DNA from: Haliotis cracherodii
Taxonomy: Eukaryota
Length of the DNA stretch: 64,000 nucleotides
Assembly (NCBI RefSeq): GCF_022045235.1
Contig: NW_027266265.1
Span: 29,202,001 to 29,266,000 of the forward strand
Reading direction: 5' to 3'
In this document: one piece after another, positions 13,386-63,856 of the stretch
How positions within the stretch are numbered: position 1 is the stretch's first letter
How the letters are laid out: each line of letters starts with the position of its first letter
The notes under the pieces: model-generated
Told to the model about the DNA's origin: nothing
Databases searched by the model: none
What the model saw: the letters and a program-made list of their open reading frames with translations, nothing else
Made by a program: the position numbers and the translations under genes

Positions 13386-16300
13386 ATGGTTTCACTTAAG
13401 CTGTTAACGTTAGGACTAGTGCTTATTTCTGAGGCGGTCTCCCAATTTTTCATTCCCAGTTTCGGTAGGTTGCAATTGTTTATTTTTCTTATAAACGTGA
13501 TATTTGTGATTATTGTTCCAGCGTCTTGGAAGCCTTTGGCCAAACATTCAAAGTGTCAAAGCAATTATTGTCGTAAGGAGTTGACAAAATTTTGAATCAG
13601 AATGAAATACAATGATTTAATAGATTCAACCATACATTGTGCGTTATTCAAGCTTAATTTGGTGATACGGGAGACGCAAGATATCTTGCGTTGGATCGAG
13701 TCCTGATCAGGTTAGGGAATTGGGTATACTTCAGTTGGGAACATCTCGGGGCGCCAGCATAACTCTTTTGCATTAACACTTTGGGTAAACCTACGGGCAC
13801 GAATTCAGACAAACCAAGAATCATATTCAGACGAATATGAGATTCGAACCTTCGAATATAGGATCCACTTAACATTGGTTACATTATGACCAGGGTAGTG
13901 TAGACCCCCTTTTGCAAAATCCTGGATCCGACTCTGTTTCTGTTCGACTTTTTATCATCCACGTATTAATGCTCACAGGTGCGGTAACCTGCGGATGGCA
14001 GTATGGCGGACAGTGCAAGAGAATCTGTGATAGTGAAGAGTACATCTTAGGCCGGCAGCCATGTGGTTTCGGTGTCGCGGTCTGCTGTTCGCCTACTCTA
14101 CGTAAGGTCTTTTTCTTGTGCAGTTTCATTTTTAAACCATCGGTCCTTGCGAGGGTTTCTGGATGAGAACATATTCCGCTTTTTTGAGTTATATATAAGA
14201 AATGATTGCGGTGATATAAACATTGGATTCACGAGGACAATATTAAAACTCGAGTATTGTATGTCACTAGTCATATCAGTCAATATCTACCAATCTATGA
14301 CTACAGTGAGGACCCATTTGATCTCCCGAGAGTGAATTGTGTCCCAGAAACAAACAGATATGGAAGACAACTTTTAGACGTTTGTAAACATATGGAAATT
14401 CATATTGTAAATGGAAGAATGAAGGGGGACAAACCATATAATTTTACCTACGTTTCTCATCAAGGAGCCAGCGTAATCGATTATTTTATTGTTTCTAGTA
14501 ACATTTTCCATTGTATGTTCCTTCGAAAATTTATTTTGTGACACCACTACATTCATAACTGAAGAAATAAGATTTCAACCTGTCCCTAAAATCAGACAAT
14601 TACATGAGAACAAGGAACGACTTGAACAACTGATGGCTCAAGATAGCTTCAGCAAAATTGTGGATGACTTTACAACTGCTTTGGAAACCGATATTAATCT
14701 AGCTGTTACCAAATTAAAGGACATGGTCCTGTTTTGTGCATCAAGTATGGGAAAGATATCAACAGGTAAATCTAGACCTAGAGAGCAACCTCCATGGTTC
14801 GACACACAGTGTGAAGATCTTAAGGTACAGAAAAGCCGGAAATTAACAAAGTTTAGAAAGTTCTCATGCAGTGAAAATAGGCTGGAATATATTGAGGCAA
14901 AGGACAAGTTCAAGAAATGTTGTAAAGAGAAGAAAATCGCTCATGAGAAGAAAATAGCTTCTGATATTTCTGAAGCCGCTGTAGGTAAAGACTGTAAAAC
15001 ATTTTGGACAGCATTGAAACATGCTCTCGGCAAACATTCTTCGAACTCAAACATTTCTCCAGACAAATGGTTGTCTTATTTCAAAAACTTATTAAATCCG
15101 GAATTAAGTGTAACATGTGAATTTGGGACTATAGTTACACACTTCATTGAAAATCACACTTTTGAAAACTGCGAACACTTCCCATTTATTGACCAGTTGT
15201 TGTCAAGTGTTATCTAATATCTCTCTAAACCAAAAGGAAGATTTTATACTGCCTTCATAGACTTTAAAAAGGCCTTTGACTATGTCGACAGAAAAAAACC
15301 CTACTATATGCCCTACTCCAGAAAGGCTGTCATGGTAAAATGTATGTTATTCTTAAAAGTATGTTTAGCTCTGTGAAAGCATGTGTTAAAGTAGATTCTG
15401 GTAAAACAGATTTGTTCGAAACAACGGTGGGTGTTAGACAGGGCTGTATGTTGAGTCCGATATTATTCATTTTCTTTATAAATGATCTTGTGACAGAAAT
15501 GTACAAAAATTGTCAAAATGGTATATTTATTTCTCAAGATATTGAGGATTTGATGCTGTTGCTTTTGTTGTACTATTTGCTTATAATGTTGTAAGTCTTC
15601 AGAGGCAATTAGATATTTTAGAATTTTTTTGTTTTAAGTGGGGTTTCCAGATAAACTTTAAAAAATCAGAAATTGTAGTTTTTAGAAATGGGGGTATTTT
15701 AAATCGCTTTGAAAAATGGTACTATAACGGTCGTTTATTAAAAACAGTTTCATATTATAAATACCTGGGAGTAGACTGATTTGGACGAAATCATGTGAGA
15801 ACCTGGCAGCTCAGGCTGTTCAGGCATGCATCCCTGTTTATAGATTATTCCAAAAAAATTCATTCCTATCATTCTCCACAGCTTGTAAAATATTTGATTG
15901 TAAAATAAGTCCTATACTTTTATATGGTGCAAAAATCTGGGGGCTAAGGTATTTTGCATGTAAAGAGAAAGTTCAAACTTCATATTTTAAATATTTTCTT
16001 GGTGTAGGTAAATATGCCTCAAACACAGCTATCTTAGGGGAAACTGGCCGCCACTATATGTTTGTCCAGAGTCAGATCAGAGCTATAAAATATTGGCTAA
16101 AATTATTGCACATGGGATCAAATAGATATCCTGTACAATGTTATTACTTCCTTAAAAAGCTAGATGAGAAAGGTAAGCACAGTTGGGTGACAGATCTTAA
16201 AAATTGTTTATATGTTAATGGTTTTTCATATGTCTGGGACTACCAAAATGTTGGTGATGTAAATATTTTTTGGTATCAATTTCAGGAAAGACTAAAAGAT

Positions 16301-19300
16301 GTTGCATTTCAAAATTGGTTTGCAAAATTGTCTGCTTCCAAATATTTATATCCTTATTCAAATGTTAAATCTTTGCTGAATGTAGAAAAATATATTGATT
16401 CTTTGCAGGATAAATCTCTCAGAAGAACCTTCAGTAAATTTAGGATTAGCTTACATAATTTTAATGTTCAGTTACTACGTAAAAAACCCTCAGATAATGA
16501 AAATAGTGTATGTAGATATTGTAACAAGGGTTGTATTGAAAATGAAGACCATGTCTTTTTCACTTGTGATTATTACCAGACTTTACGGAAAAATTATATT
16601 ATCCAACTACGGGATATGTATGACGGTTACCTGTCACTTCCAAATATTCTTAACTGCAATAATGTCGATGTAATAAAACTGACTTCTGTATACCTGTATA
16701 AGATATTTAAATCTAGAAAAACGTGACTAAATTTATATTGTACTGACATTGTAATATAGGCCATGTAGCCCACATTACCGAATAAATCTGTCTGTCTGTC
16801 TGTCAAAGATTCGTTTTATGCCACTATCTGATTCGTAATTAGGTGATTCTGGTAAATTAGACTCCGGGGGACAAAAGAATGTATACCGAAAGTAAGTATA
16901 GTCATTTATGTAATTGAAAATAGAAAGACCTGTTGTTAAATTTGATTATGTCTATTTAATCATCACTTATAACTGCAACAGTTTGTTAAACGTTACCTGT
17001 GGCTGGGTAAGTTTGTGCTTACTGGGAAGACTGGTTTGCAACCAAAAGACCTCTACCACGATTCAAATGTTATAAATTTGTGCTGGAAAAAGAATTTATT
17101 GATTTTCCAAAAGATGCCTAAGATCCCCATCAAAACTTGTGTCTTATTTTTAATTTTTTAATTTTTAAAAGTTTAAATCAAATTATATTTTAAAAAAATA
17201 CAACCATGTAGAAGAATTGTTTGAGTGCTGACCAGGCACCAGTACAGTTATTTTTATGATACAATATCGCTTACTTATTAATCAGATATTTTCAATAGAC
17301 ATATGATAAAATCAACTGAGAGGTATAGTTTCTTTTGTTGCCTTCTATGGCCAGAGTCTCAACATTTTTATACCACCATGCTTTTCACTCTAACTACATG
17401 TATCGTGAGGGAATATATACGGTTTCACGTCGTTAATCTAATACTACCACGTCACAATAGGGCTGAAATATTGCCGATGTGACGTTAAACTTTAACACAC
17501 TCACTCAATACTACCAACACGGGGGACAGCAGGAATGAGCTTCAAACACTGTACCCATGTAGAAATCGAATCCAATTCCCAGAAAACAACTTTGTGAAGT
17601 GTCGTTTTCTTTGTTATATTATATGTATGTGGTTTACAAAAACATGACAAAGATATTTCTTCTTGTAGCGTGCTTATCATATGGCGGAGTGTGTCGCCAA
17701 CGCGGGTGTTTCAGCACCTTTGAGGTGCCCCTTCAGTTCAACGTTAGATGCCCATTCGGAGAAAGAGGAACATGTTGTGTGAGACGGTCGAAAAGACCCG
17801 TAACGCAGACAACAACGATGACAACTACGACGACACTCGTGCCACCTGGTACGTTGTTAGTTACTAATAATCCACAACACGTCCTCTACGAGGGCTAGTC
17901 CAAAGGTTCTGAGCCTAACAAATAACACCAAAACTTGTAAAAGTCAACACAATCTCCCTGCTTTTCAATACACTTCTCATATCGATAGTGAAGCTTTCAA
18001 ATTCCAGTCAGAAGTTTTCTGAAGCCACCCTGAAATACCCATTCACGGCAGTTTTGCGGTCATCGTTGTCGTCATAGCGCTTTCCACGAAGATGTTCTTT
18101 CAGTTTAGGAAACAGGTGGAGCCAGGTCTGGCGAGTATGGAGGGTGAAAAAGCTCTTCTAACTAACAATGTCGCACAGCAGCCTATGCAAGTCGATAGGT
18201 GTGAGAAGAGCCATTGTCATGAAGGGGTAGAACTCCAGCACTCATCATTCCTTGTCGTTTTTCTTTGATAGAATCTCTCAGGCGATGAAGCAAATCAGCA
18301 TAGTAGGCACCGATAACTGTCTTTTGACTTTCTAAGTAATCAACAAGGATAACTTACTTCACTGATCTTGAAGACTTGGATGTCTTTGATGCCGGAGAAG
18401 TGGAATGGTGCCGTTCCGTGGATTGATGTTTTGACTCGGGATCATAGTGGTAGACCCCATGTTCATCACCCGCTACTAATCTCTTTTTAAATTTGATGAA
18501 ATCCTCTTAAATTATCTCTACATTTTCGGTGGCAATGTCAGTTGTTGACAGTTCCTTTTTCTTGAAGATCAAAATTAAGAACATTTGGCACCCAACGAGC
18601 ATATATCTTCATCTGTAAATGTTCATGATATAATAGTTTCAATGGATCCATGGCTTAGACCTGTGTCTCCCTCAAGTTCAGCAATGGCAAAAGGTCTATC
18701 TGACAGTATAAGTTTTTCTATCTCCTTGATTGAATCTTCATTAATGGAAGTTGAGGGAACATTGGAATAGCTAGGGCACTTATCCCCATACACTTGTGAC
18801 ATGCGGTCATGAATTTCTTGGGGAGTACTTTTCTCCAAAGTAAAAAAAACTTGGTACTCGTTCGTTTCCATTTCCGTGTCCATTTGCCCTGTCACGTTCA
18901 ACTGGCTGTCACTAATATACAAACGACCTCAGCAGACCAAATACTCTTGCAATGAACTACTCAAACAATGTACTACATTGACTATTCGCCCATAATTGTG
19001 GGCTTTGGTATGGCCCATAGTTGAAAGTTAGCCAGGCTTAGAACGTTTTGACCAGCCCTCGTTCTCCCTTGTTCATATTTACAAGGTGTCAACAATATCA
19101 ACATAATCAATTCATCGAAACATGAAGCTCTGTTTAAAAGAAAGAAATCGTATGTCATTTTTAATTATTATCAAATTTCCTTAAACCTAAGAAGGATAGG
19201 GTGATGCTGTTTGTTGTTTTACGCCGCACTTAGCAAAATTCCAGTTGTATGACGGCGGTCTGTAGACGTCCGGACCAGACAATCCAGTGATTGACATCAT

Positions 19301-22300
19301 GAGCATCAATCCGCGCAATTGGGATACGATGACATACATCAACCAAGTCAGTGAACCTGACCACCCGATCCCGTTAGTCGGCTCTTGCGACAAGTATAGT
19401 CACCTTTTACGGCAAGCATGGGTTGCTGAAGACCTATTCTAACCAGGATCTTCACGGGTACTTAAAGTAAAAAAAGTGATCATAATTTCCCATCCAACTC
19501 CTATCTATCGTGTCGTATTTCAGTGAAGAAATCAATGCAATAATTAATTATACCGTCGTATGGTGTCAATGTGAATTTGACTTTGCTATCAGCAGCATTT
19601 ATGTTTTGCCGCGATATTCGTATATTTTCTCTCCCATCAGAGCTAAAAAGGGCATACGATTGTTATTATCGAAACTTCACATTCCTGTGTATATTCTAAT
19701 AATTTTCAAGTTACAATAATTATTTCAGATATGCTCAGCAACGTCTTCAGATGAGTTGGAGTACTAAGTAAGGATGAGGTATTAGGATGAACACATAATA
19801 AATTCTTTATTACAACTTGGAGAGACGCTTCGGTGTAGGTTCTCTTGTTTGTTAACGGTGCTAGAACCTACGACGAAAAGGTGATCCTGATTGTAATAAA
19901 GATAGATCTTATCCTTACTTATGCTTAACTACACTAACAAAAATAATTGTAAAACGCTGGTCCTATCTTTTTAGATAAAGCTCTTGATTCTTCAACTGAG
20001 AAACTGTATTCGAAATGTTTTTAACGTAAATATTTGATAGATTCATTAATATTTATTTTCATTTTATTTCACACCGTGTTTCGTTACTGTGACTTATATA
20101 TGTAGATGTCTTTTCAGTGTGTGCTTCACGACCTCGATTTCATCCTGTAGCTGGTCGTATTGTGGGTGGTGTTCCTGTCAGCTCCCAGTGCCAGTGGCCG
20201 TGGATGGTCTCCATTAAACTTGGAACAACCAACCAGATTGGCCCTCATATCTGTGCCGGAGTGCTCGTCAACCGCAACAAGGTTCTCACCACATCAAGCT
20301 GTGTGCTCGGGTAAATTGTGACTGTAGACTCTATGCAGGGTTTAAAGTCAATCTCATTATAATCAGATCTTAGTTCTCGCTACCGCTAAACAAAGATCTG
20401 AGGACATCCCATTCCGGGTCACGTCAGACCGACCTTGCGCGAACTTTGACCGACCAATGAAATGACTGACAGGAAGTCTACATTAGCCAATCAGAAGGCA
20501 GCTTTCTTGTGCTTTACGGCACTCATTTCAAATTGGCGACAACGCTTTGAAACATATTTTGACAAATTCTCGATAAAATATTTGAAACCTGAACAAAATA
20601 ACATTTTGAAATGGCTAATAGATGGTCTAGATTGTATGGATTCAGTCGTTAAGCCCGTAACTATCGTTCGGAATACCCGTGTTAAAGTTTTCGAGGTTGT
20701 CACTTTCATGATCTGGTAAGCGACGTTCTGATTCGTCGAATGAAAGGTTGTTCTGACGTTACCCCTAATGGGATGTCCTCAGATCTTTGTTTAGCGGTAG
20801 CGAGAACTAAGATCTGATTTTAATGAGATTGGGTTTAAAGTGTAGTTTGAATGAAACAGTTGACAGTTTTAAACAATTTTACTAGATGAATACCAATAAT
20901 TCACAAAGCAGTTTGTGTTTTGCAATATTGGTGGTAACAACATATAATCAAATGAGTCAGTTAGTTGTTGCATTTTTCGACTGCATTACCCACTCTGGTT
21001 TTCCTTTCCATCAACCATGAAAACGATTACCTTCCCGTCGTCACTGACAGTGTCTTCTGTATAACGCTGGTTGTGTCAACAAAATTAACACGAACTGAAG
21101 ACAAACAAACATTTTTATTTACGTTTTAAGTTCATTGTATTATAAAAGAAAACTTCTCAAACACGTTTATGTTTGTAAAAGTCTTGTTTGTTTATTTGGG
21201 AGAATATTACTGACCGACGGAGTTCGACCACGTAAACGACGTAAGACATATATGTTATTACGGTAGTCATAGCTCTACGATCACGTTGTTGTACTTAAAG
21301 CAGATGTGATTCGTTATTCGTAATTCAACTTTGACATTACGATATCGAGTGAGATATCTGCTTCTGTTCCAGCCGCCAGGTGGTTGTAACTGTTGGCGAG
21401 AATAACATCAACAACCTTTGGGAAAATGGCGAGCAGACCGTGGCTGTAACTGGTGTAGCCACACCAAATCCAAGCCCGGCCGACCTTGGACAGCCATTGA
21501 GGGGTAGGTACTTTACCCGATATCCAACACAGTTACTGACACCATTCGTTTATGTACCAACCCCGTCCGATTTCTGTGAAGGGAGAATTGGTTCCATGTA
21601 ACCTCGTGGTAAGAGGCGACTAAGATGGATAGGCTGGGTTGTCAGGCAAGGTGATTGCGGGCCATCTTACGACCTGACGCTCTTCATAATGTCAACCACT
21701 TGTTTTCTTTTTCTGATTCGACTATTTACAGGCCGTTCATAAATAGTTGGATTATAATTGTACGTCAAAGATATATCATGGTAAACTGCATTCTACGAAA
21801 TTCAATACTGATTTAATGGCGTAAGATTGTAATCAAATGAGCGTATCGTGAATTTAAAGTATTCATATATGTGCATGGAATGTAGTCATCTGATGTCCAT
21901 TATTTAAGATGTCATCAACAATTTGCAGCTGACGACATAGCCATTCTGACTCTGGAATCATCCATTCCGTCTGATGGAACTTCATGTGCACAACCTGTCT
22001 GTCTTCCCCGGAATGGGGAGACCGTCGACTCAAACAGCAGATGTTACATAGCAGGCTGGGGGCCAAATGCACGTGAGTAGATCAATAGATTTATGAGTGA
22101 GTGAGTTGGGCTTAACGCCGCTTTTGACAGTATTCCAGTTATATCACGGCGTGTCAGCTTAACGTGGGAGGAAAGACCGAAGTGATGCAGGTCTCAGACG
22201 TTTACCACTTTGGTGAAACCCACGAGCACGGATATGGTGCTGACAAACCTAGAAACATAATCGAACCTACAATCATAGGTTTCTGGCGTGCCCAAGGGAC

Positions 22301-24486
22301 ACACTTTTGTACAGCAAATCACGGCGCCTAAGACCACAGGGCCACCCGTGCCCCCAATAGAGTTATGATCCATATGGTTAGAGATAAGAGATCAAAATAA
22401 ACAAACACGGGAAGCCATATGATTACACGGGCCTTATAGCATTTATTTGTAACACAGATATCATTGTTGACGCAATACAGACATCCCTGTTTATGTAATG
22501 CAGATATCACTTTTGGTGTAAAACGTATTCACGTAATAAAGACATCATTGTTGATGTAATACAGACTCTGTTCATGTAATACAGACAGCAAATTTAAGAA
22601 ATACAGACAACGTTGACGAAATACAGATATCACCGTTGACGTAATACAGACATCATTGTTGACGTAACGCAGACAACAATGTTGATGTAAGATAGACATC
22701 ATTGTTGGCGTAATAAAGACATCATTGTTGACGTAATATAGACAACAATATTGATGTAATATGAACATCATTTCTTGACGAAATACAGATATCACTGTTG
22801 ACGTAATACAGACATCATTGTTGACGTAATGCAGACAACAATGTTGATGTAAGATAGACATCATTGTTGACGTAATAAAGACATCATTGTTGACGTAATA
22901 CAGACATCATTGTTGACGTAATATAATGGTAATGTAATATAGACATCATTGTTGACGTAATAAAGACATCATTGTTGACGTAATGCAGACAACAATGTTG
23001 ATGTAATATAGACATCATTTCTTGACGAAATACAGATATCATTGTTGACGTAATACAAACAGCAAAGTTGTAGTGAAGATATCATTGCTGAAGTATACAC
23101 ACAGCACTGATGACGGAATACCATTAGGCATGCCAGAATCTAATGATCGTAGGTTAGAATCCCAGATTCGTCCTGATTATAATTATTTGTTTGTCTGCAC
23201 CATGCCCTGACCTGCATCACTTTAGGCTTTCATCCGATGTTTACCTGACTGAAATGCAAGTCAAAGCGGCATTGAACCCATTTAAGCCCATGCACAAACT
23301 ACGTGGATGCTTTATACTGCTGAGGGAGGGTGGGGTAACTTCGTGGTTAAAGCGTCACGATTCCCAACGTGGGGGTACAATGTGTGACGCCCATTTCTAG
23401 TGTTACCCGCCGTTATATATAAAATAAGCGGCTTTAAAACCATACTAACTCACTCACTAATAATCTGCTGAACCAGCATATGTATGTTGTTGTGCACATT
23501 ATGATGCATGTTGTTGTGCACATTATGAAACATGTTGTTGTGCACATTATGATGCATGTTGTTGTGCACATTATGATGCATGTTGTTGTGCACATTATGA
23601 TGCACATTGTTGTGCACGTTATGTACATCTCTATCTGATAAATGAATGTTTTCCAGTCGGGGACGGTCTTCTACACGAGGCTAATGTGAGGATTATGCAA
23701 AATGCCTTATGTTCATTCATAATTGGATCAAGAACCAACCTGCCAACGGACAAAATCTGTTCTCACCCTGTCATAGATCGGACCAACGCTTGTCAGGTAA
23801 ACACAAATATTATTCTTTTAAGTACCTGAACACCATCTATTATAACTTAATACAAAGTACTTTATCACTCACAGGCAATATATACTCGAAAAAAATCGGT
23901 GTCATGAATATTTTTGGGGATTTGTGTTGTAAAGTCTGGGAACACAATATCACAAAAATATCCCCCGAAATAGCCATGATCGCTAACCTTTTCGTTCCAT
24001 ACAGATATATAGTACTAAGCTAATTAGATAAGTGTATCAATTTTCTACATGAATATAAAAAACCGACATTAATCCGGACAGTATTGTTCTCTGTTAAATC
24101 GTCCGTATTGACGACTTTCCATATTAACGAATCTTAGTAATATCAATTTGATCCGTTTTTACTTATCCGCTATTAACACTGAAGGAGGATTGTATACAGT
24201 ACATCTCAAAAAGGCATCTCGCAGCTCAATCTGGAGACTTACACACTTACAGATTCTAATAAAAATGAATGTTTCTGTTTCGCTATGTGCAGACAGTACA
24301 TAACACCGTGTAGATGATGATTTTAACGATTTTCAGAGAGACAACGGTGGGATGCTGGTATGTGAAGATGGTACAGGAACGTGGAGCCTATTTGGCCTCA
24401 TCAGTGATAACAACTGCAATGCAAACATCCCTGTTATCTACACGCAGGTCAGCAGGCACCTCGGCTGGATCACCTCAAACCTTTGA
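13386..24486 (+). CDS. G3: secreted serine protease homolog (pseudoprotease) with two beta-defensin-like domains (about 379 aa)
   Basis: Exons 13386 (or 13371)-13464 signal, 13979-14101 (CGWQYGGQCKRICDSEEYILGRQPCGFGVAVCC), 17669-17848 (CLSYGGVCRQRGCFSTFEVPLQFNVRCPFGERGTCC + Thr run), 20118-20310 (AGR/IVGG..TTSSC, His57>Ser), 21373-21503, 21929-22072 (DDIAI), 23657-23796, 24337-24486 (RDNGG, Ser195>Asn). 1140 nt in frame, no stops. Confidence 0.92.
14260..16804 (+). mobile_element. 5'-truncated, frameshifted non-LTR retrotransposon (APE endonuclease + RT; CR1/L2/RTEX-like) in G3 intron 2
   Basis: Endonuclease end (IVNGRMKGD..FTY..GASVIDYFIVS), PPWFD, DFKKAFDYVDR (about 15260), GVRQGCMLSPILFIFFINDL, decayed FADD, YKYLG, C-terminal KFRISLH..CRYC..ENEDHVFFTC, AATAAA 16781 and a (TCTG)n tail. 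5' edge approximate. Confidence 0.9.
17889..19061 (-). mobile_element. Decayed mariner (Tc1/mariner) DNA transposon in G3 intron 3
   Basis: 28-bp TIRs cgagggctagtccaaaggttctgagcct / aggcttagaacgttttgaccagccctcg (4 mismatches), TA on the left. Minus-strand remnants ARWVPNVL, GDEHGVYHYDPESK, HDN, HPPYSPDLA, with stops and frameshifts. Confidence 0.92.
20349..20831 (+). mobile_element. 483-bp non-autonomous TIR element with 10-bp TSD and RecQ-like remnant (AcademH-like)
   Basis: About 65-bp TIR (caatctcatt..gatcttagttctcgctaccgctaaacaaagatctgaggacatcccatt, 1 mismatch), TSD ggtttaaagt at 20339-20348 and 20832-20841, internal peptide FSIKYLKPEQNNILKWLIDGLDCM. Confidence 0.85.
22095..22353 (-). 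mobile_element. SINE family C copy
   Basis: Reverse complement of the 55033-55317 consensus, with (TGAG)n tail. Confidence 0.8.
22450..23100. repeat. About 23-bp minisatellite (gacatcattgttgacgtaataca)n with higher-order variant pattern
   Basis: More than 20 tandem units; variant units (caacaatgttgatg, catttcttgacgaaat) recur. Confidence 0.92.
23484..23628. repeat. 24-bp minisatellite (atgttgttgtgcacattatgatgc)n
   Basis: About 6 tandem units just upstream of a G3 exon. Confidence 0.92.
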
Positions 24487-26035
24487 ATCGACCATTGCTG
24501 ACTAAGTTAGAAGCCTAGATATAATAACATCCCCACCTCATTAATATGATTTCATTTTACATGAACGTTCTTTTCATATTAATGAGATAATTTAATATGA
24601 ATTATACAATGTCCATATAAATAAATAAGATAGTTAGAATTTTCCCGTAGTTCAACAGACAAGCAAGCGAGTCTGCGTTTGTGAAACATTATACAAGGGA
24701 GAGTAGTGAACGACTAGATATAACAAGCTGTAATGTCGACACAATATAATCATGTCTTGGTGTATGTGCATTATGATTGCGAGTCGCGTAGCGCATATTT
24801 GAAACGCTGAACTGGTCAAGAGACAATTCAAGGAACACCCAGTAAAACATTGATATCTCGAAATCCTGGGGACTACATCTCCGTCTTCGAGTTAAGCAGA
24901 GACACCTTAAAAGTGTCGCCAATGCTTCAACGGTGACCATGAGGTAACTTTGTACCGAGCATAATATCGAATTCAAGGAGTTCAAGGTATGCTTTATATA
25001 CTCTGTACTGAGAACTGTACTCTTTGGAATGGATATCATACAGAGAATGTCTAATGAACATAAAGGTATTTCTAAATGTACTCTGCTGTATTACATAACT
25101 ATGTTGTACATTTTACGTATGTATGACAAGTAAACTTGATGAAAAACAATTTTGTGTGTTGACTTTAGTTGTATAAATATATCAAGTAGTTGCATGTGAA
25201 TTGTCAAAAAAATGTTCAAACTGTTTTATGGTAGACATGTTGAGGGCATTTTCCAAATCTGACGAACCAGTGACAAAAAATATGTCCGATGCAGTTACTT
25301 ATTTTCACTTGTACCATATGTTCCCGTGAATATTTGACTTGCATTTTTAGTAAATCAGTAAATGCGTATTATGTCACTGGATTGTCTGGTCCATCACTTG
25401 CTTGTCTGGCCAAGACACGATTATTTACAGGCAACCGTCGTATGGTAAGAGTACTGCTGTGCGGCGACAGGGAACACTTACTTTTGTATGCACATTGTAT
25501 TACTGGCGGTTGATACCTGTATGCATGGTCGTGCTTACCCTTTTCGCGAACATCTGCATTTCAATGTTGTTTTGCATTTTGCGCCTGATGAAATTTGTTT
25601 CGGTAGAGAGTCGAGACTGAGTGTTCTCTGGCGTTGACGTTGTATTGACGTTGTATTGACCTTTTATATTAATGGTGGGGTAAACCTGTGGAGCAGGATA
25701 CGATCACCTTTTCGAAAACAAATACCGGTGATTCATATGACATGCTTTTGAGACCAGTAAAGATCCGAGGTAGAATAGGTCTTTAGCAACCCATGATTGC
25801 CGTGAAAGGTGACTGTGCTTGTCGTAAGAGACGACTAACGAGGTCGGGTGGTTAGGCTCGCTGACTCGGTTGATGCTTGTCATCGTTTCCCAATTGAGTG
25901 GATCGATGCTCGTGATGTCAATCACTGGATTGTCTGGTCCAGACTCGATTATGTTCAGACCGTCGTCATATAGCTGGAATATCGCTGAGTGCGGCGTTAA
26001 ACAACGAACAAACGAACGTGCTTTTTATATGGTTG

Positions 26036-26181
26036 NNNNNNNNNNNNNNNNNNNNNNNNNNNNNNNNNNNNNNNNNNNNNNNNNNNNNNNNNNNNNNNNN
26101 NNNNNNNNNNNNNNNNNNNNNNNNNNNNNNNNNNNNNNNNNNNNNNNNNNNNNNNNNNNNNNNNNNNNNNNNNNNNNNNNN
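26036..26181. other. Assembly gap (146 N)
   Basis: Run of n between two SINE copies. Confidence 1.
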
Positions 26182-52706: not shown

Positions 52707-54065
52707 ACTTATCATTGATCTGTGACTGTGACTGGACATGACTCAGGAGTCAAGGGTTTCTGACGCAAATCTTTCAGAGAGACAGTCAATGGATTATTAC
52801 AAATTTAATTTAAAAAATCAATGTTTTGGCTGGCATGTTTTTTACCTATAGTTGCGGTGCATAAACAAGTCAACGTGTTACACATTTCAGGTTTATTTAT
52901 TATTCTAGGTAAAGAGAAACACACTCGACTCAAACATACAAATGATGGTTTGAGGGACCAATCTTTGAATATAGCTTTTAAAACCACACTTTATGAACAA
53001 CAGCCATTTGTATAGACAACACAAAAAGATAGTTTCATATTTATATACTGCAGTTTATGCTTTATTGGATTGTTTCGGGGTTACTCGGTAACGTGTTGGT
53101 CGTTTTCGTAACCACCCAAATTACCTTGAAAACATGCATTGTTTCAACTAATCCTTGGATACCAACATACCTACTCGTATGACGGGGACGGAAACAAGTG
53201 AATCACATTTAGTGGTGATCCTTTGTGACAACATGGGCGTGGGACAACCAGTAAACAACAAGACACATGAGAATCGGTCGTAAGACTTCACGGCGTTAAA
53301 TTACACAGGAAAGCATCTCAGCCAATCAACGGAGGACAATTGCCAAGTAATCTTCTCTCGTCATACGCGGGGATCTTTCCTCACCACAATGGGCCTGATT
53401 CGCAAGATGTGTCGTGATTTCATGAACGAGGAATGCCTTTGTTGCAGATGAAAAAAACGGCACCGGTTAGCAAAGTGCGAATCCAACAGCCCTGGGTTCA
53501 TTAAACGTGTCAAAATCAAAGCGGTATTTCTCTATCCGTAACTGCCACCGCTAACGTAGGCAGCTGAATTAAAGCAAAGGAAAGTTAGATAGTCATTCGA
53601 AAAGAACATCCCTTTATACTGGGTGAAAGGGTACTTTGTTTGACGTTCTCATTGAGCTCGTGGTTTGCACACTGACGAGGTGCCATGAGCCTATAACACC
53701 ATGGACAAACAATGTTAGGTCGTCCACAATCTCCTTTCTTAACTCAACACCATCACATACCCTGTTTGTCTTCTCATGATTACAAACTGGCCCTTTGGTC
53801 CGTAGAACTACCTCAACCCAACGCGGTCAAGCTACACAACGATACATTAGCCCACACAATAGGGGATACAAATTCCAAACAAACTTGAACTGAAACCTAC
53901 GCTTGTCACCAGTGCTATATGACTGAGCGTATGATTGTCACATTATCTGCCGGTTCTACTGTGTTTCTGCTACTGCATCGTTGTGTTGTATCAAGTGTGC
54001 ATCCCGCAAGTGTCAATCTGTGATCTCCTGTACAGATCAACGTCTTGCAGAGGTTCCTGGACACC

Positions 54066-57000
54066 ATGTTGCCCAGGACTGTGTTTCAAGTTTTACTCTT
54101 GGCCTATATAGCCTCTATTACTAATGGACAGTTTAACTGTAAGTATTGTTTTATGTCATCCATACGAATATATATGAATAATTAGCAGTGAAGGACATAA
54201 AGTCGGTAGTATCGCTATCAGTTTGGTTTGAATTATATTCTTTCACTGCAATGAAGTGCAGTGCGTTAGCACTGTTTGTTGTAAATCCAGACCGCAGGTG
54301 TTAAATTGGGTTTGAATTCATTATTTCCAGTTAAACCTGAAGTCAGCTAGCCAGTATTTACACACAATCATGAAGTAGGGCAATGGGAGTACACAAGTCA
54401 TTAGCAGCTTGCCCCGATTACCATAATATATTCTGAGCTTACTGTTGACGTGACATTTACTTTCACGGCAAAGCAGATTTCCAGGTGTATTTTGACTCCT
54501 GCCTGTGTAATTGATATATTTGCATATTGCAATTAAACGACTAACACAAACGTTGGAAACGTTTCACTGAAGTATGCAATTAATTATGTAAATATGAATA
54601 CATTGAATTATATTATTTTAACTACAGAAGGGACTCGTTGATTAGGATCATGATGAATGATATATGTCTTCGTCATTAAGCGGTCCGTCGACCTCTGACA
54701 ATCCTCTCCAGTGCAAGGTATAGCTTTGAGACAGGAATGGAAATATACATTCAAACATATCAGTTACATTAATCTATTACACTATCGTTCCATTATGCTT
54801 GTGGAGTCTTAAATGCATGTGGGGGATTGTGGTTTATGTGCTGTTTTGACAGCTGAGAAGTTCACCCGAACTTACATGTATTTCTGGGTATGTGATGTTG
54901 ACTTATCCAGCTAGTTTGTATAAAGCTTAAGCTGACAAATACGAGGTTTAATAGCGATGTGGAAAGACGTCCACGCCTATTTCTTTGTATCATGCCACGT
55001 TGGGACGCCATCATACTTTCATAATTTGCCGCGGGCACGGGTTGCCCGGTAGTCTAAGGCGCCGCGATTCGCTGTGCAGAGTTGCGTCCCTTGGGAACAC
55101 CACAAACCTATGATTGTGGGTTCGAATCCCGGTTCGCCCCGATTATGATTCTATGTTTGTCAGCACCATACCCGTGCTCGTGGGTTTCACTGAAGTGGTA
55201 AACATCTGAGACCTGCATCACTTCGGGCTTTCCTCCCACATTAAGCTGACACGCCGTGATATAACTGGAATACTCTTAAAAGCGGCGTTAAACCCAACTC
55301 ACTCACTCACTCACTCATAATTTGCCGACTAATTGCTATAACTTCTTCATGGCATATACACGACAGTTCAGGGCCACGTCTTACCCATCTCAACAGGTGA
55401 ATGAATGGCAGGATAGTTAAATAACACACGCACGCATGCACGCACGCACGCACGCACGCACGCACACGCGCACGCATGAATATATGTTGGACATGACAGT
55501 TTCTGCCAGCTGATTGGTATATACAAAAGGTTGGTGACACATGTAGAGTAAATTATGGTAAAAATGGTATCTTTTGTTTCAGTTTGTCGCTTGCTACAAG
55601 GTCAATGTCAGACCATATGTCCATCGGGTTCTACCACTCTGTTCCAAGCCCCAATTCTGTGTCCCTCAAGGAACTACTGCTGTATTCAAGATAGATCACA
55701 ACGAACGACAACGACAACAACGACAACGCGAATCCCTGCCACTCGAACCCCCTATCCGGTAATCACAGGTAGCCCCATTCTTCCGTGTTTGTGGAATCAG
55801 GTCAACGTGCTCATAGTTTAAACATAATCGGAAATAGAAATGTCATATAGAAATGATCAAACGCATACATTTACTTCACGATTAGATCACCCAAATCTGA
55901 TTTCACCTACAAATTTGACTGAATAGTCCCGATAGTTAATAAATTTCGTCCAAAACTTTACCCTGAATATCTTCAGCAACCTATTGCTTGCCGTAAGAAG
56001 CGACTAACGGGATCGGATTGTCAGCCTAGCTGACTTGGTTGATGCATCCCAATTGCTTTGATCGATACTCATGATTGTATGGCCCAGTTTGAATATGACT
56101 GAGTGTTGCGTTAAACAACAAACAAACAAACCTTGACGATCTGGTTCTTGTAGATCTTGAAGAATTATAACACACAACACTTGATTAGCACGGGTTTTAG
56201 TTGTGAGGTACATGCACATGTGGTTAACTGATAGGTATCCAATGTGATGTCACACTAAACTAACACTTACTACTACTAAGTGCATTGTATAATGTATTCC
56301 TATTTGGACAGAATGCGGGATAGGACTACAGTCCCGTATAGACGTTTCTTCACGGATTATCGGCGGTTCCAATGCTGGCCGTTGTGAATTTCCATGGATG
56401 GTGTACATATATAGAGAAAACAGTCCATGCGGAGGCAGCATCATCGACAGCAGACATATAGTGACAGCTGGTCACTGCCTGAGGTGAGATGCTGTTTGTT
56501 GAGATAAGATGCTTAAAGGGGGACTTTTCTCCTCGACCCGGTTCCTGTTTCAAGACTAAGCCTAGTCATTGTAATTAATACCTTGTTCTCCAAATAATTC
56601 TAGGAACCGGAAAATCGCAACAAGACAAATATTTGTATTGTTCATTAGTAATCACTACTTAACCATCCCCGCTCATCGTGTGTATTATATAGCCAGTGTA
56701 TTGTGTTAAGTACTCCTCGCCCCATATTACAAGCGGTAATGGTACAAGGAATGGAATATTATGTTCAGAAAATACTTATGTTTTATTGTCTTGAATAAAT
56801 CTTGCTAAGAACGAATGCACACTGACAAATACAAAATTCCCCGTTATACTCGTGATGTGCATTATATCTCCATTTATTTGGGAGAATATTTCCATTTACT
56901 TTAATCAAACCTAGATGATTAAAATAGGCTGATTCAAGTTAGCTCTATGAAATCAACTGTTGAAAAAAAGTTTTATGTAAAAAAAGAATGTGTATGTTTA

Positions 57001-59414
57001 CTCTTGTGGAAAGGGAAAATAACGTAACCTGAAAGAAATGGTCGGATTGTTCGGTTTAGATATGATACAACTTCTCGAAATATCTTACACGTGTATTGAA
57101 TCCGGATCTAGATTTGATTGGCTGTCCTTATACATTTATTTGCTGAATGTCAGTGAAGACAGGATAGGTTTGTTCCTTTCCACCACTTACAAAGAAGACC
57201 CGTGAAGATCCGGGTTAGAATTGGTCTTCAACAACCCATGCTTGTCGTAAAAGGCGATTAACAGGATGGTATGGTCAGACTCGCTGACTTGGTTGATGCA
57301 TGTCAGCATATCCAAATTTCGTGAATCGATGCTAATGATATCAATCAAAGGATTGTCTGGTCCAGACTCGATTATTTACAGACCGCCGTCATATTGCTAG
57401 AATATTGTTGAGTACGGCGTTAAACAAGAAACAAAGAAACGCAAAAGCCTCCCCTGTTTTGTATTCTCGGGTAAAATATGACATTTCATATGGCTGTTGT
57501 TTGTTCTTAAAAAGCAAAGAGTTATCTCTTTGTAAAACATCTGTACAGTGCTCCTTCGTTAATTAGATAATTACCATTCAGATATACAGTTTGCCATCAC
57601 CAATACTATCGCCACTTTACAATTAAATCTGTTTACCCTTTCAGTAACGTAGCAAAGTCGCAGCTGACGATAACTATTGGTGAATACAACACGAATGAGT
57701 ACAGGCCCAAGGCGGAGTTTGTCGTCCGCAATTACAGAATATTCATCCCGTCGACATACCAATCCCAGTACTACAGTAAGGGTCATATATAAGTGAGTGC
57801 GTGAATGTTGTCTAACACTGCAAACAGCAATGTTACAGCTATATTACAGCGACATGTAAATAATCGAAGCTGCACCAGGCATGTAAATGCCTGAAAGCAA
57901 TGGTTCACATCGTCAGGGCAAGACGATGCTCAATCAACCAAGTCAGCGACCCTGACCACCGGATCCTCTTTGGCCAGTGCCTATGGCCAACATGACACAG
58001 ATGGTCTCCTTGGAATATATTGCATATTTATACACATGGAAAACGTTCCCGACCACACCTTCTTTTTCATATATCTCGAACTTCTATGTATCATTTTGAA
58101 ATATCTACATTGATATCATTTTGATAAAAGTCAAAGACACCACCGATACTTCTTGGGCAGTCGGTAAAAGAAAATCGTATGTTCCTCCAGATGATCGCTT
58201 GTATGGTCATATGTATGGCACAAAGCAGAAGATGCAATTGAAAGGGTCCATAAACTTATTATTATTGCTAAAGACCCGTTGCAAATCAATTTATTACATA
58301 ATCGAATTCTGTTTCTGTATTTCACTATGTGTATGTAACTTTGTAGCAAACAGTAAATATGTTTTGTAAAATATTAAAACAGGATACGATTAAATAAGTG
58401 CCTGTTATGTAAGGAAATATATAGTAAGCGCTGCATTACTTTTCCCAGGTGTATATATAAATGACATTTTCATAAGTTATCATAGGTTATCATAGGCAAC
58501 TAATATATACGTTACCTAAAGCCATTAGTCATTTATAAAAAAAAACACCATTCGTTATGTGGTGACATAGGAAGCTGTTTGAAAGTATGGACATAAAGGT
58601 GCATTGCAAGGCAACTTCAGATACATGTATGCAGTAAACGTCCCAGTACCGAGCGTCAAACCAAACTTCTTGGGTTTCTATGTACTAGTACGTGTAAGTA
58701 CTCAAATTACGCTTTTTAAAATCTCATTTAGAAGTGCAATGGATGTATTATCCAAACCAGTCTATTGCAATGATGATGTTTTTTTCTAGGGGATGACATT
58801 GCAATGATTAAACTAGATGAACCAATCGACTTTTCACGGTATGAGTGCCTCACACCAATCTGTATCCCCGAGTCCTGGAGAAGGTTTTCCGGAGTGTCTT
58901 GCACTGTGATCGGATGGGGCGTGACACGTACAAACTATACATGTGAGTGTTATGTATATTACTTTAACATTAATGTTTCTAGATTTCAAGGTGTTATGCA
59001 GTATTTGATACCATGAAATGTATTTGAAACCCAAAGTGTTTATCGACATCATATGAGGGGTGGCTGAGAAGTTCAGAACCTGAATGTGATGGAATGAGTT
59101 GATGGAGTTGGATGCTAATTATTTTGTCAATATAATCCCCTCCGAGTTCCACACGCTTCTGCCAACGATGCTTCAGTGCCTGGACCCCACATCTTTGTCC
59201 TGATGGTTGAAAAATGTCCACCAAAGCAGATGGTAGGATGAGATGGTAATGTGGCTGTTAACCTTCTAGCGCCTTACAGGCAGCTTGGGTTGTATACTCC
59301 CCATGGAGATGAGAATGAAATCCGAGTGCTCACTGATCAATTGACCGGGGTAATAATAGTGTATCGCTATGAGCATCCACTTGGTGAATGGATTCTGGCG
59401 CATTTTCAATGCAC

Positions 59415-59481
<67 letters not shown>

Positions 59482-62400
59482 CATTTTTATTATTATCATT
59501 ATTATTATATTGGCAATTAATAGTCTTTTGGGATGTGGTCCACAAGTATGATGTCTTTTAAATTCCCGAGAACCAAAGCCATTATTTTGCCACCTGATAG
59601 AACAAACTTTTTCTTCTTCTTTGGAGTAGACGTTAGATGTTTCCACTGCTTTGACTTTTGTTTAGTCTTTGGGTGACAGTGGTAAACCCAAGCCTCACCC
59701 GTGGTTACAAATCCCACGACAAGATTAGCTGGATATGCTTCAAAACGACGTAAATTCCCATGAGAGATTCCCATTGTCATGCCCAGTTCGTTTCTATAAT
59801 AATTTATCTTGAACTTGCGTTTTAGCGTACACTGGGATAGGTCAAGAACATCAATAACATCCTCGTTACGACCCACCCCAGTGAACAAAACAAAGAAATG
59901 CACATCCAAACTGTGGCCTGGATCCGTTTCTAAAAATAAATTTACCTCAGTATCTATCTGGCACATCTTTATGATAACTTCAATGATAGGCCAAATGGTC
60001 AATGATGACTAATACTTGTAATCGTAACGGGATATTCATAGGGTTTGGTCCTCACTCTATGAGTTTAATACTCCAATGAACTCACACAAAGTCCAAACTT
60101 AAAAAGATATTGGCATAAACTGAATCCGCACTGTTTTATTATCATGAATAGTTATTTACTGAATTATTAATTCTTGGCAATTATCAAGAGTATAAATGTG
60201 GCAGATAAAAGATTTGTGAATCTCCTCAAATATCCTCTAGAGTGTGAGTGAGCAATAAGAGGTTTTAGTCGTTAAAGAATGGCACCATTGACATAAACAA
60301 CATCTGTGGATTAAGGTTCTTCCAAAAGGCTGGGGCATCCTAATGCCACGTCTTTTATTTGACTTGACTCATCCAAGATATACATGCAACAGAAACAAGC
60401 AGATTCACACTGTCTCGAAATTTGCGGGTTTGACATTTACTTATCTTTAGTCCATTGAATTTGTACATGTTGGGTTAAAGGCAGATGTTGTGTGTCTACC
60501 TGTGGTTGAGCAGGTGCACTGGTCTGCTGTCTTGCCAGGTGTGGACAGGTGCAAGCTATAATGGCATCTTCAAACCGATAAATACTTCGGTATTCAATGA
60601 GCCTACGTCAATATTCTGTTAATTCGTTTTAGTGAACATTCTTGCATATGCATCATTTGTTATTGGCAATTATTCACTTACAGACTGTGAGTTCAACCCT
60701 AACCCCGTGACGAACCAATTATATATGTGCACTCATTATACAGAGGACAGAATACCTTACTCTATTCTATTTGGCTGGCCTAAAAAGTATTAACGTTTCG
60801 TATAGAAACCTGGAATGCATTGGAAATTAAAATTGTCTCCAAGCTTCCCTTGATCTCCCGAAAAATAAAAAATTAGAATAATTATGCATTAGGCCGTTTA
60901 AACAAGACAAGAAATTGCCTGCCACAAAAATTACATTGTTGCAAGGTGTTTTCTTTTAAAACCACTCAGGCTCATAGTATAAGGTATAAAACATATATTT
61001 GTATCTGTAACTGAAACTTATATATTCTTGATACAAAAGCATGTTCTTTTTTCAATCTATCGATCGAAGTAAATATATTTGATTTAATGATTCCATTAAT
61101 CATATTGATGCAACGATATTTCAAGTATATAACCTAGCGTTATAGCAAACATTATCAAAAGAAACACATTGTCATATCGATATCACGGTACCTCGACGAT
61201 GTGTGTTTTATGATTATGTCTGATAAGTATGGCCATATGTATACTCCAAATGTCAGTTGAAATTGTTTATTGCGCCAAAGACCATAGGCCTATAGGACAT
61301 AAAATCAAACATTATATATGTATTGATATTCAAATCAGAAAATACATATACATGTGTAGTGACGGGTATAACTTTAAAGCATGAAATACTTAATTTAGGT
61401 ACATGTACAGTTTTATTCTCCAGCTAATAATGTAGGGGGATATAGTTATCATCTGGTCTGTCTGCCCATCCGTCAGTCCGTCCGGTATTTCGTTTCTGGA
61501 GCATAACTTGAAAACCGGACTACATCTCTAAAACTAATACTAGGTATTCTTTCTTCAAACTGTGCACACACAAAGACCAGTTTGTCAAATGGTGCCTTTT
61601 GCTATTTAGGGATTTTAAGAATTTATATTTCTTTAGCGTCCATTGCAACACATTTGGTCTTCACTCTGTTCATACATGTAATAGAGTGTTTGTCTGGACC
61701 ATATCTCTAAAACTGATAAGTATTCATTCATGAAACTGTGCACACGCAAAGACAAGGTTGTCTACTTGTGCCTTTTGATATTTAGATTTTTAAAATTAAT
61801 ATTTTTTTCGGTTGCCATAGCAACAAGTTTGACTTTGACTCTGTTCACATCGGTGTCTACCTGACATAGAAATATAAAATTCCGAATCCAAAGTCCATGG
61901 TATTGTTTTGACAGCTTAATAACTACTCTTGTATGCGGACAGACAGCTTAGATAGAAACCAAGTTGGAACAAAGGCAACAGTCAGAGGATTTGTTCTAAT
62001 GTATTTGGGGTGGGTGAGTGGGGAAGGGGTGATTTACAAGCCATTCCAAGCATGTATTATCATAAAATATATCGTTTCCTTAAATCGACAAAAGTCATAC
62101 ACACAAGCAAGAAATGAAACTAATTTTCAACACAACCATAACCAAACTCCAATGGTCACGAGCTACGGATAAATCGATATGTTTTGAAGGTCCAGAAGGT
62201 AAAAGAAAGCACGTTTCATTGTACATGTAATCATTTTTTTTAAAATGATAGTGTACATGTACGTATATATCAGAGATAATTGTGAATATTGGATACAAAT
62301 GGGACACATTGCATATAAACTGGTTTGATTATGATTATCTTTATAGATCTGAATCCTCCCCTGTCAGCGATACTACAGAAGGTAGACGTGGACATCGTGG

Positions 62401-63856
62401 ACAACTCCATCTGTACACAGAAGTTTGGGACGAGCTATTTCAGGAGTACTAACTATTGTGCCGGTATTCTTGCAGGAGGACGCGACTCGTGTGGTGTATG
62501 TAACCTTTACCGTTAATACTATATTATAAATCCATGTAATATTTATATTCACATTGAACGAGTAGTACATTTTCTTTCACAGGGAAATAGTTTCGAGTCG
62601 TTTAAGGCACTGCAAATCGCTGTGCTGAGTTGTGTCCCTCAGGAATGCCAGAAACCTATCACCGTGGGTTCGAATCCCTGATCCCTGATCATGTTTTAAG
62701 GTTTGTCATGACCTTGCTCGTGGGTTTGGTAAACGCCTAGGACCTGCATTGATTCGGGCTTTCTTCCCACGTCACGCTCACAAGCCGTAAAATAACTGAA
62801 ATACTGTTCAAATCGGCGTTAAACCCAACTCACTCACTCACCCACTCGAGAAGACTACAGACAGCTGATGATATTATGTTTAGGACATATGGATGGACAA
62901 ATGGTGAAACTTGAGGGAACACCGTGTTCCCTCAACTTATGGCTGCAACGTATACCCCATCAACATAATGATAAAAGCGACAAAACGCTTTCCACAATGA
63001 TATGAAATCTCCACCAAAAGTCTGTTGTATGATTCCGACTGTTCAATGAGCTTATGTTTATGAATCACTATCAAATAGTAACGATAACAGTTGTTCGTTG
63101 AAAGGTGAGAGATAAGAAAGAGTGCTTTTGGCGAATTGATTTAGCTACTGATGAGTATATTATACTAATAATACATTTGGGATAACACAGACCATCAACA
63201 GTAATTGATAAATGTTATAATGTTATGTTATTGTTTACTGATGATATGAAAATTAATAAATGTATCATAGACTGATATCATCCTATGCTTAGGATATTGA
63301 TGCCCCATTGGATTTCGGCGCCACAACACCGATTATACTGATGATATGCAAATTAATAAATGTATCATAAACTGATATCATCCTATGCTTGGGATATTGA
63401 TGGCCCAGTGGATTTTGGCGCCACAAAACCGATTATACAGAGTGACGTCCCTTAGGTACCCTTATCCCTCGGGGCCTGATACTGATCCGGGTTTTTTTTG
63501 TCAACACCTTACCGGCTCTCTTTGTCTTGTAAAGTGTTGAATGTCTATATCCTCTGTCACCATAATCAGCTGACATACCTTGATGGAATGATGACAGTGA
63601 AATGTTCTTAGCAGCATCAAATCCAACTCACCCACTCGTTTAACTTTGAACAAAGTATCACCTTAATTATTCATTTCAGGGCGATTCAGGAGGACCCCTT
63701 ATGTGTTCAACAATGGACAGATTCGGCAGACGGAGGTTTACACTTGCAGGTCTTGTCTCAACGGGATCCAACTGTGCTGAGAAAGATACCCCGGCTATAT
63801 ACACCGATGTAGCGCAATTCCGCAACTGGATTGATTCTATTCTTGCAACTCCATAG
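54066..63856 (+). CDS. G6: secreted trypsin-like serine protease zymogen with one beta-defensin-like domain and Thr-rich linker (about 346 aa), triad intact
   Basis: Exons 54066-54138 signal (MLPRTVFQVLLLAYIASITNG/QFN), 55583-55768 (CRLLQGQCQTICPSGSTTLFQAPILCPSRNYCC + T8), 56312-56483 (SSR/IIGG..TAGHC), 57645-57775, 58790-58942 (DDIAM), 62347-62495 (GRDSCG), 63680-63856 (GDSGGP). 1041 nt in frame. Confidence 0.93.
55033..55317 (+). mobile_element. SINE family C, best-preserved copy (others 10433-10650, 48905-49140, 62595-62845)
   Basis: ggtagtctaaggcgccg (tRNA-Leu-like D arm), gtgggttcgaatccc B-box, tail agcggcgttaaacccaactc(actc)n. Confidence 0.85.
59053..59790 (-). mobile_element. Second mariner transposase relic, in a G6 intron
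   Basis: Minus-strand peptides VTTGEAWVYHCHPKTKQKSKQWK..SGGKIMALV..IILVDH and KHRWQKRVELGGDYIDK. Terminal tgaggggtggctgagaagttcagaacct resembles the TIR of the 17889 element. Far boundary approximate. Confidence 0.85.
59417..59510. repeat. (TTA)n microsatellite inside the mariner relic
   Basis: Direct trinucleotide run; source of poly-Y/I/N ORFs. Confidence 0.97.
61410..62060 (+). mobile_element. Non-autonomous Helentron/pearl(CvA)-like element
   Basis: ttttattctcc..gggggatatag start, then a (GTCT/GTCC) microsatellite and two tandem about 180-bp core repeats (aaactgtgcacac..gtgccttttg..actctgttca). Boundaries approximate. Confidence 0.6.
63236..63439. repeat. About 100-bp tandem duplication (2 copies)
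   Basis: tactgatgatatg..ttaataaatgtatcat..actgatatcatcctatgctt..gcgccacaa..ccgattata occurs twice. Confidence 0.9.

Follow-up and report, generated by a model that had tools for sequence, protein, structure and literature searches.

In arthropods it is the clip-domain serine proteases, together with homologues that are catalytically dead, that drive clotting, melanisation and Toll signalling. Both kinds are secreted; at the N-terminus they have one or two six-Cys domains that end in CC, followed by a linker with a Cys able to tether the N-terminal fragment and a cleavage site after Arg and before I-V/I-G-G; their gene clusters mix active enzymes with homologues that lack the catalytic His and Ser. 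We know of no clip-like protease system that has been defined in molluscs, the humoral immunity of which is relevant to abalone disease and aquaculture. The window analysed here is a 64 kb stretch of the genome of the black abalone, Haliotis cracherodii (C2:29202001-29266000, in an assembly of 1.18 Gb and 80 contigs; ~38% guanine plus cytosine (GC)) and carries on its + strand a head-to-tail array of trypsin-type genes, four of which, G3-G6, have small six-Cys modules ahead of the protease domain and share the above features with the arthropod proteins; G1 and G2 lie upstream. We consider it probable that G3-G6 are four tandem genes for secreted mosaic proteins composed of a signal peptide, one or two defensin-fold modules, a linker and an S1 protease domain, and that these make up a clip-like system. 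The structural and architectural account taken by itself is likely; an immune, clip-like function, suggested by analogy, is a serious but tentative proposal. The host is a lophotrochozoan, and for the abalone proteins a cascade, a substrate or an immune role is at this stage no more than putative.

All genes and modules given below are on the + strand, with positions counted in the window. G3 (13386-24486) has eight exons (13386-13464, 13979-14101, 17669-17848, 20118-20310, 21373-21503, 21929-22072, 23657-23796 and 24337-24486) and encodes 379 amino acids that comprise a signal peptide, module A (exon 13979-14101; 123 nt, phase 1-1), module B with a Thr-rich linker in the same exon (17669-17848) and a dead S1 domain. 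G4 (28563-35180), likewise of eight exons (28563-28641, 29213-29335, 30649-30840, 31998-32178, 32483-32619, 33283-33414, 34097-34242 and 35031-35180) and 379 amino acids, follows the same order, with module A on exon 29213-29335, module B and a linker that is not Thr-rich on exon 30649-30840, and again a dead S1 domain. The third gene, G5 (37393-43916), encodes 403 amino acids in eight exons (37393-37468, 37904-38023, 39584-39856, 40728-40896, 41407-41531, 42252-42392, 42658-42812 and 43764-43916): a signal peptide, module A (exon 37904-38023), module B followed by a long Ser/Thr/Pro linker (exon 39584-39856) and a dead, divergent S1 domain with no IVGG N-terminus. G6 (54066-63856) has seven exons (54066-54138, 55583-55768, 56312-56483, 57645-57775, 58790-58942, 62347-62495 and 63680-63856) and encodes 346 amino acids with a signal peptide, a single module B and a Thr8 linker on one exon (55583-55768), and an active S1 domain.

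Every module occupies its own exon, flanked by phase-1 introns with AG/GT borders so that the frame is kept; type A exons measure 120-123 nt and type B exons include the linker too. In G3, G4 and G5 every intron is GT-AG and the open reading frames (ORFs) are intact, and the series of intron phases, 1,1,(1),2,1,1,0, is conserved across G3-G6. The earlier note, made from the DNA letters, had predicted that the Cys exons are spliced to the protease exons, and this is supported along three lines. For G6, spliced contigs from four public runs (three studies) cover 53900-54138, 55583-55764, 56308-56481, 57643-57775 and 58790-58942, skip the GT..AG introns and join the first five exons, such that the module exon is linked on both sides (joints 54138>55583 and 55764/8>56308/12); these runs were labelled as RNA by guess, although contigs that skip GT..AG introns can hardly be DNA. 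Exon ends of G6 were set allowing for contig cut offsets, and its intron phases were used in building the G3-G5 models. The G6 model is identical at 346 of 346 residues to RefSeq XP_071091982.1 (P0008), the G3 and G4 models are 100% identical to the H. cracherodii RefSeq proteins P0130 and P0131, and the G5 model runs colinear with H. asinina XP_067651498 (P0002) at 79% identity.

The seven modules were located by a six-frame pattern scan and alignment, and their Cys spacings were recomputed separately. Type A modules are found at 13990-14088 in G3 (x7/x3/x11/x6), 29224-29322 in G4 (x6/x3/x11/x7, plus a seventh Cys) and 37906-38013 in G5 (x7/x3/x11/x9); type B modules at 17671-17778 in G3 (x6/x4/x13/x7), 30651-30755 in G4 (x6/x4/x13/x6), 39586-39687 in G5 (x6/x3/x13/x6) and 55585-55683 in G6 (x6/x3/x13/x5). 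The number of modules and their spacings agree exactly with what the earlier note had listed, as do the terminal CC and the G-x-C at Cys2 (each in 7/7) and a Glu 3-5 residues past Cys3 in six of seven, G6 being the exception. Modules are 33-36 residues long, begin 2-11 nt into their exon after the phase-1 intron (7/7, measured to Cys1) and fit the pattern C-x(4-8)-C-x(3-5)-C-x(9-13)-C-x(4-7)-CC, bar the last gap of x9 in G5 module A. When a profile of the seven was run against the 1.18 Gb genome, its own modules scored 52-70 bits (G5 module B highest, at 70) and the next-best match 20.4 bits; the seven therefore make up a separate family restricted to this locus, as judged by the profile, and are not chance Cys-rich ORFs. 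The seventh Cys of G4 module A (C-W-R-F-C-G-Q-C, 29224-29245, +) is also present in H. asinina and makes the total Cys count odd, so that it may be a free thiol or take part in an intermolecular disulfide.

Downstream of the modules the protease domains are unmistakable in Pfam searches: Trypsin (PF00089) matched full-length P0001-P0004 and P0008 with expectation (E) values of 1e-28 to 1e-51 and also matched window exons singly (for example G3 exon 4 and G4 exons), and at the N-terminus of the full-length orthologues Pfam named no domain. The catalytic triad of His57, Asp102 and Ser195 is complete in G6 only (TAGHC, DDIAM and GDSGG, with Asp189). Both His57 and Ser195 are replaced in G3 (TTSSC at the His site, RDNGG at the Ser site), G4 (TTASC, GDNGG) and G5 (TVTGC, TDGGS), with equal losses in the H. 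asinina orthologues. Judged by these residues G3, G4 and G5 are non-catalytic protease homologues and G6 should be an active, trypsin-like, Arg/Lys-specific zymogen that is cut between SSR and IIGG. The label 'serine proteases' given to the whole family in the earlier note thus fits G6 but not the other three genes; and the layout it described, of signal, module(s), Thr linker and S1 domain, holds for G3, G5 and G6 but not for the linker of G4, which has no poly-Thr run.

The linkers consist of 31-56% Ser, Thr and Pro and are probably O-glycosylated. Each protein has exactly one linker Cys, 4-13 residues ahead of the Arg-Ile/Tyr cleavage site, and the S1 domains of G3-G6 have an odd number of Cys; this is the pattern expected if the N-terminal piece stays tethered to the protease domain, as in chymotrypsinogen and clip proteases. 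The cleavage sequence itself, R followed by I-V/L-G-G, is kept in the dead members G3 and G4. Chymotrypsinogens likewise have a Cys a little ahead of the activation site, one at the 'C-L/I-P' position and an odd S1 Cys count; they differ in being catalytically active and in having no N-terminal Cys-rich module or mucin-like linker. RefSeq gives the abalone genes generic chymotrypsin/chymotrypsinogen or elastase-type names, such as 'chymotrypsin-like elastase 2A', an annotation that masks both the module and the catalytic loss.

To what fold the modules belong was approached by structure prediction with AlphaFold2, run with the alignment of the seven paralogues; this is a shallow alignment, and the models are predictions. 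For type A (G3 module 1) the model is a three-stranded sheet (predicted local distance difference test score 86), and for type B (the G6 module) a sheet with a short N-terminal helix (score 77). The first Foldseek match of type A was human beta-defensin 4 (hBD4; template modelling score 0.67, E 0.04), in a list made up almost wholly of beta-, alpha- and big defensins. In an independent structural alignment against 48,161 PDB representative chains, 26 of the 27 chains that type A matched at Z of at least 2 have the trans-defensin fold, the best being hBD4 (Z 5.2, root-mean-square deviation (rmsd) 1.3 A over 35 of 39 residues), with helianthamide (Z 4.1) and the oyster BigDef1 C-domain (Z 3.8) also present. 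The type B search gave the defensin fold for 25 of 26 chains at this threshold, including hBD4 (Z 4.3), the crocodile beta-defensin CpoBD13 (Z 4.2), hBD2 (Z 4.1, rmsd 1.4 A) and helianthamide (Z 3.7). These Z values are modest, as expected for models of 39 residues, yet nearly every chain listed shares one fold, that of defensins and related toxins, and the modules are predicted to adopt the beta-defensin (trans-defensin) fold and not the clip fold.

At the level of sequence the relationship is less clear. The best Pfam match was that of G4 module A to Defensin_beta_2 (PF13841; E 0.012, 16.4 bits against a cut-off of 22.2), and PF00711 gave E 0.018 and 15.5 bits against a cut-off of 21; all defensin-type Pfam matches were to beta-defensin families, all fell below threshold, and two of the seven modules had no Pfam match at all. 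A profile search of PDB sequences aligned the modules over their full length, Cys to Cys, with Hact-4, oyster BigDef5 and crocodile beta-defensin 13, though without significance. An indirect link is given by P0007, a non-molluscan protein matched by profile A1 (E 1.5e-5), which itself passes PF13841 with 23.0 bits. Membership of a defensin family is accordingly not established from sequence. Of the beta-/big-defensin signature claimed in the earlier note, the Cys pattern stands, now with a predicted fold from AlphaFold, Foldseek and the PDB search beside it; Pfam cut-offs and cationic charge do not go along with it.

The modules share with beta-defensins and the C-domain of big defensins the six-Cys pattern, the terminal CC, the G-x-C at Cys2 and the predicted three-stranded sheet, to which type B adds its helix. 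A phase-1 intron 5' of the Cys-rich region is a hallmark of big defensin and beta-defensin genes (Gerdol et al., PMC7203481), and one precedes each of the seven module exons, just before the Cys-rich part. Unlike defensins, which are free peptides and strongly cationic, the abalone modules are internal to proteins of 346-403 residues and near neutral (net charge 0 to +2, pI 6.0-8.4), and the proteins have no hydrophobic big-defensin N-domain. Helianthamide, an alpha-amylase inhibitor of beta-defensin fold that ranks among the top structural matches of both module types, and the tick carboxypeptidase inhibitor, which was not among the structural or sequence search matches, are free inhibitors, whereas the abalone modules are fused to an S1 domain. 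The helianthamide match indicates that a defensin fold can serve as a protein binder and not a membrane-active peptide. In the abalone genome, matches to Pfam Defensin_beta_2 and Defensin_big were marginal and on inspection not six-Cys modules, and a look-alike search of the ESM Atlas with the two-module region yielded one unnamed cluster (score 0.79), which was uninformative.

Orthologues are present in H. asinina and H. rufescens. Between two abalone species the modules are 69-91% identical and the S1 domains 79-87%, with the modules exceeding the G4 and G5 linkers. A search of 1.84 billion representative proteins with the seven-module profile returned only four Haliotis gene clusters and a few non-molluscan proteins, and a homologue search with the module region of P0003 alone recovered the query only; searches with whole proteins found further gastropod relatives, so that the seven-module profile was evidently too narrow. 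The design is no local, abalone-only feature, as the combination of module and S1 domain occurs in seven other gastropod genera (Babylonia, Nucella, Pomacea, Patella, Lottia, Aplysia and Littorina), eight with Haliotis. In Babylonia, Nucella and Pomacea, the S1 relatives nearest to G6 combine a single six-Cys module and a linker rich in Thr or Pro with an active GDSGGPLMC domain, and the module of the Pomacea orthologue scores 19.4 bits on Defensin_beta_2; a similar protein of Patella caerulea has an active GDSGGPLVC domain and is placed elsewhere in the tree. The G3 relatives of Lottia, Patella, Aplysia and Littorina have a single module or two, and their motif, mostly G-D-D-G-G-M-L-V-C, lacks Ser195. 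In Lottia a type A module (x7/x3/x11/x6) precedes a type B-like one (x6/x3/x12/x5), the same order as in abalone, which indicates that the two-module state predates Haliotis.

In a tree of 42 S1 domains, with support from the Shimodaira-Hasegawa-like approximate likelihood ratio test (SH-aLRT), the ten dead module-bearing proteins form one clade from five gastropod genera (SH-aLRT 99), and G6 clusters with Gigantopelta, Pomacea, Babylonia and Nucella (SH-aLRT 98). On this tree the active and the dead kinds are old, gastropod-wide groups. Ser195 is replaced by D, N or G in 10 of 10 members of the dead clade and His57 is kept in Aplysia and Littorina, from which it follows that the Ser was lost first; homologues of the G3-G5 type retain an intact ORF, conserved across species, with Ser195 replaced. 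The earlier note knew of no characterised family with this architecture, and in the open-access literature we found no paper that describes, for molluscs, the fusion of an S1 domain with a defensin-fold module; the genes are nonetheless in RefSeq under generic names, and the idea is conceptually that of the known clip design. A review of big defensins (PMC7203481) mentions neither clip domains nor proteases in the sense of such a fusion.

Given the parallels in design, the modules might themselves be divergent clip domains and the genes a molluscan family of clip proteases and homologues, in which a shortened clip has come to look defensin-like. This would account for the N-terminal six-Cys domain ending in CC, the linker Cys, the Arg site, the S1 domain and the many dead homologues; arthropod clip or stubble-type proteases are among the 120 closest S1 relatives of G6, RefSeq calls the H. 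rufescens orthologue 'stubble-like', and CLIPs are stated to be present in arthropods and mollusks (PMC8611957). No Pfam CLIP (PF12032) match was obtained at E<=10 for the modules or the full-length proteins; this model is insensitive, however, as it missed three of four arthropod clip-like controls and matched the other at E 0.088, so that its silence on the modules says little. Across the abalone genome it gave only two marginal, partial matches. A profile built from 22 gastropod modules gave no score to six arthropod clip-like modules, and in profile comparison the Lottia module aligned (E 4e-4) where the clip regions of a thrips PPAF-like and an ant easter-like protein did not. The spacing between Cys2 and Cys3 is x3-4 in the abalone modules, which are also shorter, against x5 in five arthropod clip-like modules drawn from the same match list, bearing out the distinction that the earlier note had made on this point. 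Two structural searches of the whole PDB returned no clip-bearing chain at Z of at least 2, although which clip chains were among the 48,161 was not established, and a PDB sequence search for clip-bearing entries returned mostly catalytic domains. The structure paper on PPAF-II of 2005 is said to have found the clip fold distinct from that of defensins. With no profile similarity to clip domains and a predicted fold that matches defensins, we find it unlikely that the modules are clip domains and do not class them as such; the design is nonetheless that of clip proteins, and the two may be distant kin. A bolder version of the same kinship, in which an extracellular gastropod system of proteases and pseudoproteases acquired genuine beta-/big-defensin-type prodomains, for recognition or regulation, by exon shuffling as a lophotrochozoan counterpart of clip cascades, and the arthropod clip domain is an enlarged, derived descendant of the same module, seems doubtful to us; if true, a common origin would tie together clip domains, big defensins and beta-defensins.

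Two further explanations were weighed. The module exons are small and direct transcript support is limited to G6, so they could be separate small defensin genes or chance ORFs that gene prediction has merged with the protease exons. For G6 this is refuted by the contigs of four runs that join the module exon on both sides, and for the family at large the frame-keeping GT-AG borders of module exons that have no start or stop of their own, the recurrence of the fusion in proteins of eight gastropod genera and the score gap of 52-70 versus 20 bits make it scarcely credible. Alternatively the modules could be cargo, the proteins being carriers that release defensin-like peptides on cleavage, with the S1 domain as a chaperone or processing scaffold; the same idea of peptide release was reportedly once proposed for the clip domains of horseshoe crabs. 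Apart from the defensin-like fold, this draws on a furin-type motif, RRSKR, directly past G3 module B (17782-17796, +), with RRWKR in its place in H. asinina. A basic motif of this kind is missing in G5, G6 and Lottia, however; the low net charge of the modules is not that of cationic peptides, and the S1-like domain is as conserved as the modules over Gastropoda, which a mere carrier would not need. We regard release of cargo as highly unlikely.

We return to the probable clip-like system of proteases and homologues with defensin-fold modules, the workings of which can be sketched by analogy. The proteins would be secreted, as are clip proteases and homologues such as PPAF-II, and an upstream Arg-specific protease would activate G6. 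G3 and G4 could be cleaved between R and I-V/L-G-G without gain of activity, and the dead members, as cleavable proteins, would assist the active ones or other partners in the manner of cofactors or adaptors. The defensin-fold modules would be N-terminal binding or regulatory domains for microbes, glycans or partner proteins, and after cleavage the N-terminal piece would stay disulfide-tethered to the protease domain via the linker Cys. The whole would then resemble the arthropod clip proteases and homologues, and act most plausibly in extracellular defence.

Several points weigh against this account. No module attains a Pfam gathering score, and the near-neutral charge is unlike that of antimicrobial defensins. 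The folds are predictions from an alignment of seven paralogues, and the defensin pairing of disulfides (C1-C5, C2-C4, C3-C6) is for the modules an expectation. The phase-1 intron is a weak argument by itself, since 1-1 exons are common in extracellular mosaic proteins. Direct transcript support is confined to G6, and the tree does not show a single fusion event for the active and dead branches. Among vertebrate proteins, ovochymases come nearest to the S1 domain of G6, on account of which a reproductive or digestive role is possible; and what is proposed for G3-G6 as to tissue, induction, partners, cleavage and immune role is argued by analogy.

What the analysis does bring out is a conserved, gastropod-wide gene family with an active and a dead branch, unnamed in databases, in which a defensin-fold module would stand at the clip position. 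The known clip design already places a six-Cys, defensin-like domain before an S1 domain, so that the family is a variant of it, one that should interest invertebrate immunologists. Whether molluscs possess protease cascades of the arthropod kind, what role a defensin fold plays inside a larger protein, and whether clip domains and beta-defensins share an origin can now be tested.

The sole non-molluscan matches of the module profile (P0005, P0007, P0009 and P0010; E 1e-5 to 1e-7 in the 1.84 billion proteins) look bacterial. They are encoded, without introns, on metagenome contigs of 62-63% GC and have lipobox-like signals (LAGC, LFGC); the loci, among them L026:1-423 (+) and L025:2373-2645 (+), adjoin an HNH-like gene and a gene for a matrixin-type metalloprotease. 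In L026 one module follows the C-terminus of an apparent S1 protease (GDSGCG ... HRSWI), a short fragment that Pfam did not confirm. No relative of P0009 was encoded in any bacterial genome representative searched. If genuine, bacteria too would have beta-defensin-like modules, in one case joined to the other end of a protease than in abalone.

Within the array, the active S1 exons of G2 are preceded by a small Cys module of a different kind (6815-6916, +). No Pfam family matches it, and by eye it is like the N-termini of P0087, P0105 and P0092, proteins of Patella and Biomphalaria that form a separate group in the S1 tree. The only run of N in the window, an assembly gap at 26036-26181, is intergenic between G3 and G4 in repeat-rich DNA, 1.5 kb 3' of the G3 stop (24486) and 2.4 kb 5' of the G4 ATG (28563). 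No exon or reading frame spans it and the models on either side are complete, so that the uncertainty is confined to the distance and sequence between G3 and G4.

The window also contains repeats of several kinds. A short dispersed element, the translation of which contains '...SGPDNPVIDIMSI...' or '...GLSGPDSI...', is present in many copies (4484-4708, 12564-12716, 19266-19439, 25828-26035, 31048-31191 and 57251-57397), one of which adjoins the gap and may explain the break in the assembly. Intron 2 of G3 (3.6 kb), between the module exons, harbours a decayed, frame-broken non-LTR retroelement (14215-16726, +) recognised by Pfam RVT_1 (E 2e-6) and weakly by zf-RVT. Tandem repeats comprise a 23/46 bp minisatellite (22449-23065) and a 24 bp repeat (23480-23623) in G3 intron 6, a 34 bp repeat of 12.9 copies in G5 intron 3 (40047-40472) and a perfect 20 bp repeat of 9.6 copies between G5 and G6 (52516-52706). 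Finally, repeats in G6 introns (55082-55475 and 57052-57445) were covered in each of the four runs by contigs that number in the thousands and have a very high summed depth; these are abundant dispersed repeats, apparently with transcription somewhere in the genome.

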